This document shows positions 58,993 to 62,294 of a DNA stretch of 64,000 nucleotides, one piece after another. The notes beneath the pieces were generated by a model. The model worked only from the letters and a program-made list of their open reading frames with translations. It made no database searches and was not told where the DNA came from. How positions within the stretch are numbered: the stretch's first letter is position 1; every line of letters begins with the position of its first letter. The stretch lies in sequence record PV037725.1; one strand, given 5' to 3'. Both the position numbers and the translations under genes were made by a program.

Positions 58993-60270
58993 ATGTTAAC
59001 CAACACTATTTCACAAGAGGTCTTAGCCATTGGAGCTAAGACTCCACTTGTAGACATCTGCCTTAACTATGTTAAGAAAATGCGTGAAGCATGGCCTGAC
59101 TATCCGAATAATGACAATCGTTTTAGTTATTCAGATAAGCCATGGATTGAAGCCACTAACGAGTTCGTCAAGCTGATTCGAAATAAGGTAGGCCCTAAGA
59201 TCTCTATTGACGTCTACAGTGGACACGACTACTTCAATATGGGTGTAACATCCCAGATCTGGTTTAATGGCCACTCAGGCTCTAGATGGTATAACGACCC
59301 TAACATGAAAGTCTTCACCAAAGACGACGTTGATGTAAACGAGTCGCTCACCATTGATCTTAAGAATGTGACTGTTAAAGGGACATTGGTTGATACATTG
59401 CAGTTCAGGTTGTATTACACTGAGGCTGTGATGTTCAACAAAAGTATGTTCACGGATCAAGAAGTTGTTGCTGTGTTCCTACATGAGTTCGGACATATCT
59501 TTAACACGTTCATGACCCTAGGCGATTACGTATGGCTTAACTATTATCTGACTGACGGGATCGAGATCTTGTTGGGTAAGAAGAAGAACGTATTTAAGAT
59601 TAATATCTTATCTGATGCAGCGATCGCTAAGATGGGTATGTCTAACAAAGACGTTGATGCATTCATGAACGATCGTAATGAGGAAACCGCTAAACGGGTT
59701 ATCCTTAGTTTGGCTAAGCTCGAACCTCGTCATCATCTTACGCAGAACGATCTGTTAGCAAACCGTCGTGAAGAGCAGCTCGCTGATCTATTCGCCACCC
59801 GTCTTGGTTATGGCCGACACTTTGCCCAATTCGAATACAAGACCGCTAAGTACTTCGGTGATCCTGAATTGAGTGGTACCAACTGGGTAGCAGAAACAGC
59901 CAAGGCTGTATTCGCCGTCGCCACCTTACCTTTGACCGTTCTTTGGATTATAGGTCATGACCCACTACAAGGTGGTATGAAAGGGCGGTACGATGATCCA
60001 TTCACACGTATCACAAAGATTCGTCGTGACATGGTCGCACAACTTAAGAATCCTGGCCCATTAGATCGTGACGCTTTAGTGGCCGACATCGCGGTGTTGG
60101 ATGATGTCTTAAAAGAGTACAGTACTAACGTTTCTTTCTACGATAGTCTCATTACTTTCTTCAGACCCAACCAGCGTAAGCAGCAGCAAAATACTAAGGT
60201 CGAGAATGATCTAGAATCCCTATTTAACAATGACCTGTTCTTGCAGGCATTTAAACTCAGTAAACTCTAA
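58993..60270 (+). CDS. virion (head) protein with an HExxH metallopeptidase motif
   Basis: VFLHEFGH, downstream EEQLADLFA, one hydrophobic helix; start of the structural block. Confidence 0.7.
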   Translation: MLTNTISQEVLAIGAKTPLVDICLNYVKKMREAWPDYPNNDNRFSYSDKPWIEATNEFVKLIRNKVGPKISIDVYSGHDYFNMGVTSQIWFNGHSGSRWYNDPNMKVFTKDDVDVNESLTIDLKNVTVKGTLVDTLQFRLYYTEAVMFNKSMFTDQEVVAVFLHEFGHIFNTFMTLGDYVWLNYYLTDGIEILLGKKKNVFKINILSDAAIAKMGMSNKDVDAFMNDRNEETAKRVILSLAKLEPRHHLTQNDLLANRREEQLADLFATRLGYGRHFAQFEYKTAKYFGDPELSGTNWVAETAKAVFAVATLPLTVLWIIGHDPLQGGMKGRYDDPFTRITKIRRDMVAQLKNPGPLDRDALVADIAVLDDVLKEYSTNVSFYDSLITFFRPNQRKQQQNTKVENDLESLFNNDLFLQAFKLSKL

Positions 60271-60281
60271 GGTGAATCCCC

Positions 60282-60716
60282 ATGCGTATCGGTTTTGAAA
60301 TCGCTCGTCTCCTCAAAGAAGTTCGTTCCCAAGAAGGTAACGATCGTGCAACTCGTGCTGCAATGGTAGCTAATGCCCTTGGCTACTTCTATCCTGTTGA
60401 TCCATCCCTGAGTGCCATTGAAAATGCCGAAGTGCATATGTCAGCTGCACGTAAAGTGATTAGCCAGATCAACGAAAACCTGACCCTTGACACCAAGCTT
60501 TGCCTGGAACTGTTCAAGCAAGTCATGTTCATCCGCCTCGAACTGATTAATGGTGCCACTGATTCTTCGATCATTGAAGCCGCAATGCGTTCGCATACAG
60601 CTAACCTGCATCAGACTACCTCTGAGACTGTAGCTGTAACTGCACTGGTGACCAATCTCGAATTCGCCCGTGCTCAGAATGGTATTCGTCAGGTACTGGC
60701 CTCAGTCACGGAGTGA
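60282..60716 (+). CDS. probable virion structural protein
   Basis: 144 aa helical ORF in the structural operon. Confidence 0.65.
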   Translation: MRIGFEIARLLKEVRSQEGNDRATRAAMVANALGYFYPVDPSLSAIENAEVHMSAARKVISQINENLTLDTKLCLELFKQVMFIRLELINGATDSSIIEAAMRSHTANLHQTTSETVAVTALVTNLEFARAQNGIRQVLASVTE

Positions 60717-60720
60717 TTCC

Positions 60721-61023
60721 ATGACCGACTATGCACGTACTGTGTATCCACGAATTACCAAGGGTTACGCAAAGTCACTCATCGCTGAAGAAGAGATCAT
60801 CACCTGTCCTAAGATGTGTATGGTGGTCTGTATGGTTCGATTGACTAATGGTCATCGTTTACTTACCGATGCGATTGTGGCTAATAGTGGTTTGTTTGAT
60901 CCTGATAAAGGAACTCAGATCGCTCGCGAGAAAATGATCAACAAGATCATGGACCTTGAAATGTATCAGATGCGAACGCGCCTGACCGAAGAACGAACTA
61001 AGGAGGCCACCCATGTTGAGTGA
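60721..61023 (+). CDS. N4 Gp49 / Sf6 gp66 family protein (Acb4-like nucleotide sponge candidate)
   Basis: PRIT...SLI.EE...VVCMVRLTNGH...FDPDKGTQIAREKMINKIMDLEMY follows the family pattern. Confidence 0.7.
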   Translation: MTDYARTVYPRITKGYAKSLIAEEEIITCPKMCMVVCMVRLTNGHRLLTDAIVANSGLFDPDKGTQIAREKMINKIMDLEMYQMRTRLTEERTKEATHVE

Positions 61024-62257
61024 TGCCGAACTGTTAGACAATCAAACCCAAACACTAGAAGAAGTGTTGGACAAGCTCCACGACCGGTCTGATGAACCAC
61101 TAGAACGAGCGGTAGCCGTTGACGTTGGTACAAATGCAATTCAAGTAGCGGTTGAATGTTTGCATACCCTGGCTGATCTCACGCGCACCATCAGACGTGA
61201 AGGTGTCTCTAAAGCCGACGTACAAGCCTTACGGGCTATTCAAACAAGAATGCAACCCTACGCTAGACTTCCAACTAAAGTTGCTCTGGAAGCCTACGAG
61301 GGCCTCTTCACACCGTCTCGTACAATGATCAACCAAACAGTTTCGCAAGAAGCTAGCTTGGCTGAATTTGGTAAGACGCTGAAAGAGTGGTTCTTCATCT
61401 TTGTTGACTTCATCATCCGTGTAACGGACTGGTGTCGTAAGGTGTGGAACTCAGAAGACGTTATCCGTACTCGACTGAAAGCATTAGATACCCAGCTGAT
61501 GTCCGCTTACAACCAGATGATGCAATATGCCGAGTATAGTAAGCAGAATAAACGTGACCCATTGAGTCAGTTGGACGATCTTGCTCGTACCGTATTGAGC
61601 GATCCTAAGTTGACCCAGTCGCGTAGTATGATCATCGCCTTTAACGTAAATAAGAATACCCATGGTATTAAGAACGTTGACAGTATGATCGATCGTTACG
61701 TAGCCAACAGCTTAAAAGATATCTCCTCACTTAAGACCCACATCGAACAGAACAAACCCGGTTCGGTTAGCGGTTGGCCAGGCGTTGAGATTAATTCTTT
61801 AGCTGAACAGCTGGAACAACTGACGGTTGCCCAGGATGAGAAAGACTATCTGATCAAAGCAGTTACTCTAGACTTCTGGCGTAATCCTCGTGGTCTGGTA
61901 ACTCGTGAGATCTTTGCACCGTCCCACAACATCGAGCAAGTTCAGAAGATCGCAAAGGAAATCCGTAGCATCAAACGGAATGCCAACTTCGACGACTTAA
62001 AAGAAATCGATATTGTCGTCCAGGCTATCGATGACCTCACTAAAACCGTAAGTGGTTTGGAGCGAGTCATTAAGTTCAAGCAACAGCTTTACGCGGATTA
62101 TTACAAAGCGTCTGCAACCTACGCTAACTTCTATATTCGTGCACGTGACACTATTGCAGAAGAAGTCCGTGTGAATCTGGTGGATGACAAAATCAAGGTT
62201 GCCCTTGATAAGTTAGATAAGACCTGGGCTGAGCTTTTGAACAGCATGGGTATTTAA
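61013..62257 (+). CDS. virion head / inner-body-type structural protein
   Basis: 414 aa helical; ALE-A and SQE-A resemble prohead-protease cleavage sites; SD GGAGG. Confidence 0.65.
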   Translation: MLSDAELLDNQTQTLEEVLDKLHDRSDEPLERAVAVDVGTNAIQVAVECLHTLADLTRTIRREGVSKADVQALRAIQTRMQPYARLPTKVALEAYEGLFTPSRTMINQTVSQEASLAEFGKTLKEWFFIFVDFIIRVTDWCRKVWNSEDVIRTRLKALDTQLMSAYNQMMQYAEYSKQNKRDPLSQLDDLARTVLSDPKLTQSRSMIIAFNVNKNTHGIKNVDSMIDRYVANSLKDISSLKTHIEQNKPGSVSGWPGVEINSLAEQLEQLTVAQDEKDYLIKAVTLDFWRNPRGLVTREIFAPSHNIEQVQKIAKEIRSIKRNANFDDLKEIDIVVQAIDDLTKTVSGLERVIKFKQQLYADYYKASATYANFYIRARDTIAEEVRVNLVDDKIKVALDKLDKTWAELLNSMGI

Positions 62258-62260
62258 CGA

Positions 62261-62294
62261 CATAAAGCCCCGACCGAAAGGCCGGGGCAATATG
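62261..62294. terminator. bidirectional hairpin terminator (repeat family)
   Basis: CATAAAGCCCCGACC-GAAA-GGCCGGGGCAATATG between convergent genes. Confidence 0.8.

Follow-up and report, generated by a model that had tools for sequence, protein, structure and literature searches.

The gene at positions 60721 to 61023 (+ strand) of the window, a stretch of 64,000 nucleotides from the genome of Pseudomonas phage Viktualia (PV037725.1), belongs to the Acb4 family (PF13876) and probably encodes a functional, diverged immune-signal sponge. The protein is most likely a homotetramer that acts in the cytoplasm as a sponge for cyclic nucleotide immune signals, with its pocket and its inter-dimer joint apparently remodelled.

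Nucleus-forming jumbo phages shield their DNA from nucleases, but defences that rely on small-molecule alarm signals can still reach them. Many Pseudomonas chimalliviruses outside the phiKZ genus were found to carry a Tad1-like gene together with a conserved Acb4-family gene fixed in the head-vertex block, and the latter points to a second anti-signalling layer. This bears on host-range prediction for jumbo phages against Pseudomonas. This is a modest advance on a known family: a published list already contained the orthologs, and the function in these phages is inferred.

The Viktualia record comprises 322,655 bp (host P. syringae), and record positions are obtained by adding 124,000 to the window positions used here. 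The gene of interest corresponds to CDS0349, annotated as 'hypothetical protein'. It starts with ATG, stops with TGA and encodes 100 aa (11.5 kDa). It was characterized through its open reading frame and translation, Pfam, AlphaFold2, Foldseek and a tetramer prediction.

Family assignment

The original prediction was that the protein is a diverged member of PF13876 and that this family includes the anti-CBASS sponge Acb4. In the profile search, the protein matched PF13876 (Phage_gp49_66) with 39.1 bits (E 1.1e-9) against a curated cut-off of 27 bits, residues 12-88 spanning the full profile (1-82 of 82), and it matched PHROG 322 with an E-value of 5.8e-25. It was the only PF13876 gene in the Viktualia genome. 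Six other jumbo-phage orthologs were tested and all were above the cut-off (29.2-44.5 bits). Membership was thereby confirmed, and so was the divergence, with 29-45 bits for the jumbo-phage orthologs compared to 89-120 bits for canonical members. The equation of PF13876 with the Acb4 sponges is stated by Chang et al. (bioRxiv 10.1101/2024.12.30.630793), who described gp1.3 of phage SPO1 as anti-CBASS 4 (Acb4), a PF13876 member whose tetramers act as a sponge for 3'3'-cGAMP and for cyclic dinucleotides related to it. N4 gp48 has also been named Acb4 and has sponge activity (PMC12657230). The SPO1 Acb4 gene was taken from the phage record, and its residues agreed with all numbered contact residues in Chang et al. 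On the PF13876 profile it scored 35.5 bits over part of the profile, below the 39.1 bits of the Viktualia protein.

The Viktualia protein could be connected to SPO1 Acb4 only by combining Pfam with hhalign and a comparison of folds. By hhalign, the jumbo-phage clade aligned to N4 gp48 with 95.5% and an E-value of 1.4e-8. The match of the clade to SPO1 Acb4 alone was weak (E 0.0037, probability 8.9%) and served for its register alone, which agreed with MAFFT and with the structural ranges. Sequence searches of the PDB with the single protein and with a 14-sequence profile did not recover the SPO1 Acb4 structure, 9E4W. The best PDB sequence match, LAS1 (E 0.6-0.9), was dismissed as chance.

The orthologs from 201phi2-1, PhiPA3, Phabio, Noxifer and Psa21 are all present among the 1,331 Acb4 homologs in Table S3 of bioRxiv 10.1101/2024.12.30.630793, and the GenBank note for the RVTF4 ortholog already names the family. 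The Viktualia gene therefore adds a member to a known family; the assignment to Acb4 is correct and, for this clade, not new.

Predicted fold and oligomeric state

An AlphaFold2 model built on a 46-sequence alignment (mean pLDDT 87.2) had a helix at residues 14-19, strands at 21-29, 34-41 and 46-52, and a long helix at 61-97. In this model the protein has the Acb4 protomer fold, three antiparallel strands flanked by N- and C-terminal helices. When the model was compared to the PDB with Foldseek, ranks 1-13 were all chains of 9E4W (E about 1e-3, TM 0.56-0.71), and the next entry had an E-value of 0.13. VIA-align likewise placed SPO1 Acb4 at the top (9e4w_N, Z 8.8, rmsd 2.6 over 74 residues); a comparison of a model with Acb4 had been proposed with the original prediction. 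After 9E4W, VIA-align returned release factor RF2 (Z 8.1), ribosome hibernation factors and double-stranded-RNA-binding domains; matches to the same three groups have been reported for SPO1 Acb4 (Chang et al.).

The four-copy prediction gave an ipSAE of 0.86 (median of three runs), compared to 0.00 for the best of three controls, with a contact agreement between runs of at least 95% and a partner pLDDT of at least 83. In calibration, the ipSAE mark was reached by 20 of 30 proteins solved as one-chain pairs and by 1 of 23 solved as single chains, a calibration that is only rough for a prediction with its own alignment and four copies. Two interfaces were predicted. One, through residues 23-54, gives a sheet-on-sheet dimer; the other, the 'joint', links two dimers, with helix residues 79-89 of one closing around the 41-45 loop of the other. 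The SPO1 Acb4 tetramer is likewise built of beta-sandwich dimers and a 'joint' (Chang et al.). The Viktualia protein is thus confidently predicted to be a homotetramer with both SPO1 Acb4 interface types, and part of this result may be due to likeness to the solved complex. Across the predicted joint, H45 and the L-E-M-Y segment were in contact (e.g. residue 45 with 81, 82 and 85), which suggests co-adapted remodelling beside the ligand site.

SPO1 Acb4, the best structural match of the Viktualia model, is a PF13876 protein of similar size (96 aa compared to 100 aa) that shares the three-antiparallel-strand core with flanking helices, both tetramer interface types (predicted for Viktualia) and an atypical Pfam score (35.5 and 39.1 bits, respectively). 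It differs in having two C-terminal helices where one long helix is predicted for the Viktualia protein, and the two are only 16-19% identical in structural alignments, with 8 of 10 ligand-contact residues different. SPO1 Acb4 is also acidic and encoded among small early genes, whereas the Viktualia protein is near-neutral and encoded in a head-structural block. Across seven jumbo-phage orthologs the pI ranged from 6.1 to 9.3 (neutral to basic), compared to 4.7 and 4.95 for N4 and SPO1 Acb4, respectively.

Changed motifs and selection

The protein was aligned by MAFFT with N4 gp48, RSL1, Fifi011, RHph_N65, a Vibrio phage, epsilon15, BMBtp3 and SPO1 Acb4. With N4 gp48 and the canonical PF13876 members, the Viktualia protein shares the N-terminal P-R-I-T motif, the L-x-N-G turn, F-D-x-x-x-G, an A-R pair and L-E-x-Y; it has no C-terminal extension and no fused Tad2 or Sequestin domain. 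Where canonical members have G-E/K-S-A-C, the Viktualia protein has T49-D-A-I-V53, and K-I-W-x-L-E-G-Y is replaced by K-I-M77-D-L-E-M-Y82. MAFFT and hhalign against N4 gp48 agreed on both changes, in keeping with the N4 Gp49/Sf6 gp66 register and the altered motifs (TDAIV, MDLEMY) that had been read from the sequence originally. In the MAFFT alignment, N-G-F also reads N-G-H. In the model, TDAIV would lie in the strand leading to the ligand loop and MDLEMY in the inter-dimer joint, so that both the joint and the pocket would be remodelled.

The clade assembled from genomes and metagenomes (n=46) had an intact frame in every member, with 11 invariant and 15 nearly invariant positions. A51, V53, A54, N55, G64, K71, I76, E80 and Y82 were invariant in all 46, and the conserved positions include the changed A-I-V-A-N stretch. 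The syntenic proteins of Psa21, RVTF4 and Noxifer keep a more canonical T-E-S-x-x-C and, by this reading of the alignment, are therefore motif intermediates. SPO1 Acb4 itself has I-K-F-L-A-Y in place of W-x-L-E-G-Y, with W, E and G all missing. The dN/dS values were 0.13 (Viktualia/201phi2-1) and 0.065 (PA1C/PhiPA3), and the gene is under strong purifying selection. We read TDAIV and MDLEMY as changes fixed in a jumbo-phage subclade, with the joint and pocket apparently remodelled and not decaying.

Ligand pocket

The pocket was compared in the register in which Viktualia residue i corresponds to SPO1 residue i+3. The SPO1 ligand-contact residues K36, F48 (base-stacking), E49, V56 and Y57 are then C33, H45, R46, V53 and A54 in the Viktualia protein, and F62, N63, I66, T70 and K81 are F59, D60, K63, I67 and D78, respectively. 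Only two of the ten (V56 and F62) are identical. N4 Acb4 and other canonical members are likewise unlike SPO1 at most contact positions; therefore the contact residues do not define the family. At five pocket-equivalent positions (V53, A54, F59, D60 and I67) the Viktualia protein matches canonical Gram-negative members, where V/C, A, F, D and I agree with the canonical members rather than with SPO1. Within the clade, R46, V53, A54 and F59 show little or no variation. Taken together, however, conservation at the pocket-equivalent positions did not significantly exceed that of the remaining fold (P = 0.19). Ligand specificity therefore cannot be read from the sequence.

Chang et al. tested eight Acb4 homologs, not named in the text; all of them bound 3'3'-cGAMP, and those from phages of Gram-negative hosts also bound c-di-AMP. 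The altered ligand specificity put forward in the original prediction is possible for the Viktualia protein. An Acb4 domain from another Pseudomonas phage occurs in Ab09 gp59, an Acb4-Sequestin fusion; its Acb4 domain, when isolated, forms a tetramer in SEC-MALS, and 3'3'-cGAMP and 2'3'-c-di-AMP are ligands of the fusion. In contrast to this two-domain protein, which is encoded in a variable anti-defence island of an N4-like phage, the Viktualia protein has one domain only, and its jumbo-phage gene is syntenic and has been inherited vertically.

Gene context and expression

The gene was said originally to be embedded in a structural operon, and its neighbours agreed with this. Upstream is a gene for a phiKZ gp85-like capsid vertex-binding protein (60282-60716, +; PF25615, E 6.4e-64; PHROG 14569) and downstream one for a phiKZ gp86-like capsid vertex-binding protein (61013-62257, +; PF25617, E 4.6e-124; PHROG 14440). 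The tightly packed block begins with a gene for a phiKZ gp84-like head protein (58993-60270, +; PHROG 2767, E 2.9e-99); the 201phi2-1 record describes gp145 as 'similar to phiKZ gp84' and detected by virion mass spectrometry. The gaps between the four genes of 58993-62257 are 11, 4 and -11 nt.

The ribosome-binding sites were read directly from the sequence. The Shine-Dalgarno sequence of the Acb4-like gene, GGAG (60710-60713, +), falls within the final codons of the gp85-like gene, whose stop (60714-60716) is separated from the ATG by 4 nt; across seven phages this spacing was 0-17 nt. The site of the gp86-like gene, AAGGAGG (61000-61006, +), lies within codons K94-E95-A96 of the Acb4-like gene, which overlaps the gp86-like gene by 11 nt (61013-61023). 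In 201phi2-1 the AAGGAGG is identical, and in seven phages the overlap or spacing at this junction ranged from -32 to +3 nt. The conservation of K94 and E95 near the C-terminus is therefore probably caused by the gp86-like translation signal rather than by the function of the Acb4-like protein itself.

Between the end of the gp86-like gene and a convergent gene, a GC-rich hairpin was found at 62267-62288 (nine pairs, eight of them G-C). The terminator scan called it on the - strand, and it is likely the end of the transcription unit; on the + strand, the scan found no terminator-like site in 58993-62257 ahead of this hairpin. A sigma-70 promoter scan found nothing, and is uninformative here since phages of this kind use their own RNA polymerases. 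The sequencing runs that contained DNA of the block were DNA-type metagenomes only, with no RNA run among the matches. Judged by the arrangement of the block, the Acb4-like gene would be expressed late, together with the head genes. This context is atypical, as known acb4 genes are found among small early or anti-defence genes: SPO1 Acb4 is active early in infection (Chang et al.), and in N4-like phages the anti-signalling hotspot lies beside replication genes, unlike the position of the Viktualia gene.

Distribution and inheritance

The slot between the gp85- and gp86-like genes is occupied in Viktualia, 201phi2-1 (gp147), PhiPA3 (gp088), PA1C, Phabio, Psa21, RVTF4 and Noxifer, as well as in metagenomic contigs, and extends over five named genera. 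Identity to the Viktualia protein was 76% for 201phi2-1, 46% for PhiPA3, 45% for Phabio, 31% for Psa21 and 29% for Noxifer, and the divergence tracks that of gp84, gp85 and gp86. The gene has been inherited vertically within the head-vertex block of Pseudomonas chimalliviruses.

Among Pseudomonas phage records, a gp85-like gene was present in 68 and an Acb4-like gene in 20. The phiKZ genus, about 48 of the 68 gp85-bearing records, is without the gene and has gp85 and gp86 10 nt apart. Phage D6 (OQ363659.1) also lacks it, with a clean 10-nt junction between its gp85- and gp86-like genes. The D6 flanking genes are 69-74% identical to those of Psa21 and RVTF4, both of which carry the gene; the absence from D6 is therefore a loss, a clean natural deletion. 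Of the two absences, the one in D6 is the only clear loss. The phages without the gene (phiKZ, D6) and those with it (Psa21, RVTF4, PhiPA3, 201phi2-1) make up a natural comparison set.

The Acb4-like gene is thus an old one that has been passed on vertically and under selection, yet virions can be made without it, as the phiKZ genus lacks it and D6 has lost it cleanly. Such a profile suits a counter-defence gene of the accessory type and weighs against an essential structural role.

Near-identical DNA of 58993-62257 was also observed in metagenome contigs from food, soil, wastewater and rhizosphere in 11 studies, with shares of 0.14-0.81 of the words sampled. Phages resembling Viktualia therefore seem to be widespread in the environment.

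The Tad1-like protein and packaging

The position among head genes had raised the possibility of a packaged sponge. Such a protein would enter the capsid, perhaps by way of the vertex-binding complex of gp85 and gp86, and would be injected with the DNA to quench signals from the first minutes of infection. For this there is a precedent in the same phage group. The phiKZ gp184/Tad1 is a minor capsid protein with its N-terminus wedged in the capsid, and its C-terminal sponge domain is reportedly freed by the head protease and injected (PMC12676376); the Goslar preprint also lists gp184 among the minor components of the vertex-binding complex to which gp85 and gp86 belong. Moreover, the immediate neighbours of the Acb4-like gene are the gp85- and gp86-like genes, to both of which it is translationally coupled. 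As members of nucleotide-signal sponge families of Pseudomonas chimalliviruses, the two proteins are alike in being tied to the capsid vertex complex, physically for gp184 and by gene position only for the Acb4-like gene. They are unrelated in fold and family, and gp184 is a virion protein with a long N-terminal capsid-anchoring extension.

That extension comprises about 100 residues of the 230 aa of phiKZ gp184, with the Tad1-like part at 111-230. The Viktualia homolog (record positions 311238-311849, outside the window) is 203 aa long, of which about 85 residues form an acidic N-terminal extension, and it is 59% identical to phiKZ gp184 over the C-terminal 119 residues; 201phi2-1 also has such a homolog. 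With both a Tad1-like and an Acb4-like gene, Viktualia therefore carries two predicted sponge families. No Tad2 domain (PF11195) was found in the Viktualia genome.

In the 100-aa Acb4-like protein, by comparison, the fold begins at about residue 12, and the roughly 11 residues ahead of it leave no targeting extension or propeptide of the capsid-anchoring kind. In the 201phi2-1 record, gp145, gp146, gp148 and gp149 are marked as virion proteins by mass spectrometry, and within this series the mark is missing solely for gp147, the ortholog with 76% identity, although a small low-copy protein could escape detection. The same holds for annotation in PhiPA3, PA1C, Phabio, Psa21, Noxifer and RVTF4, where it is the sole gene of the block without a virion-protein annotation, and phiKZ assembles the vertex complex without this gene. 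Because it has no N-terminal extension and gp147 is not among the recorded virion proteins, packaging of the Acb4-like protein is unlikely, contrary to the earlier suggestion, and a capsid-loaded, injected sponge is distinctly improbable.

Function and alternative explanations

Literature searches found no study of 201phi2-1 gp147, PhiPA3 gp088 or a jumbo-phage Acb4, and no report of binding or defence rescue for the clade. The following sequence of events is proposed. The protein would be made in the cytoplasm alongside the head proteins from a single, translationally coupled transcription unit and would probably not be packaged. The tetramer would then sequester cyclic nucleotide alarm signals, most likely the cyclic dinucleotides of CBASS, so that abortive-infection effectors, which the phage nucleus cannot exclude, would never be switched on.

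A decaying or non-functional Acb4 remnant was also considered, as loss of function had been suggested in the original prediction. The low Pfam score (39 compared to 89-120 bits for canonical members) and the altered hallmark motifs could be taken this way. The functional founder SPO1 Acb4, however, is just as atypical and scores lower still (35.5 bits), which makes loss of function unlikely. The changed motif is invariant (A51, V53, A54, N55) in a clade where 46 of 46 frames are intact, the dN/dS is 0.065-0.13, the gene keeps its own ribosome-binding site, and the fold and tetramer predictions are confident, the latter passing its controls. A remnant is thus very improbable. More weight is due to an Acb4/double-stranded-RNA-binding-like fold recruited for another task, such as help in head assembly or RNA or ribosome binding. 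The long residence in the structural block would then reflect that task: the gene has been inherited vertically at a single site throughout the history of the structural genes around it, with identity tracking that of gp84, gp85 and gp86, which is unusual for anti-defence genes. The mostly different ligand-contact residues, a clade pI above that of the validated Acb4s, and RF2 (Z 8.1), hibernation factors and dsRNA-binding domains as the next matches after 9E4W point the same way. These last matches, however, come with the fold itself, as SPO1 Acb4, a bona fide sponge, has them too; the prediction retains the tetramer interfaces of the Acb4 type, and a gene lost cleanly by D6 and absent from the phiKZ genus (about 48 of 68 gp85-bearing records) is dispensable. 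Such a recruited, non-sponge role is accordingly considered unlikely.

A further reading is that the clade, with its fixed N-G-H-R, D-A-I-V-A-N and L-E-M-Y, is an Acb4 variant that sequesters, by its remodelled joint and pocket, a signal other than cGAMP, or else that the protein enters the capsid in low copies with the gp85/gp86 vertex complex; this is unlikely. Cyclic tri-AMP, the activator of NucC, is a candidate for such a signal, and the NucC pathway reportedly acts against phiKZ-like phages despite the nucleus (PMC12676376). If either were true, nucleus-forming phages would have a second dedicated anti-signalling device, hard-wired in the head module.

Other features of the head block

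In the gp84-like head protein (58993-60270, +), residues 164-168 form an H-E-x-x-H motif, which was kept in all nine gp84-like proteins examined, including phiKZ gp84. The protein also had a weak Pfam match to Peptidase_M48 (E 0.039). A virion head protein may here contain a site like that of zinc metalloproteases.
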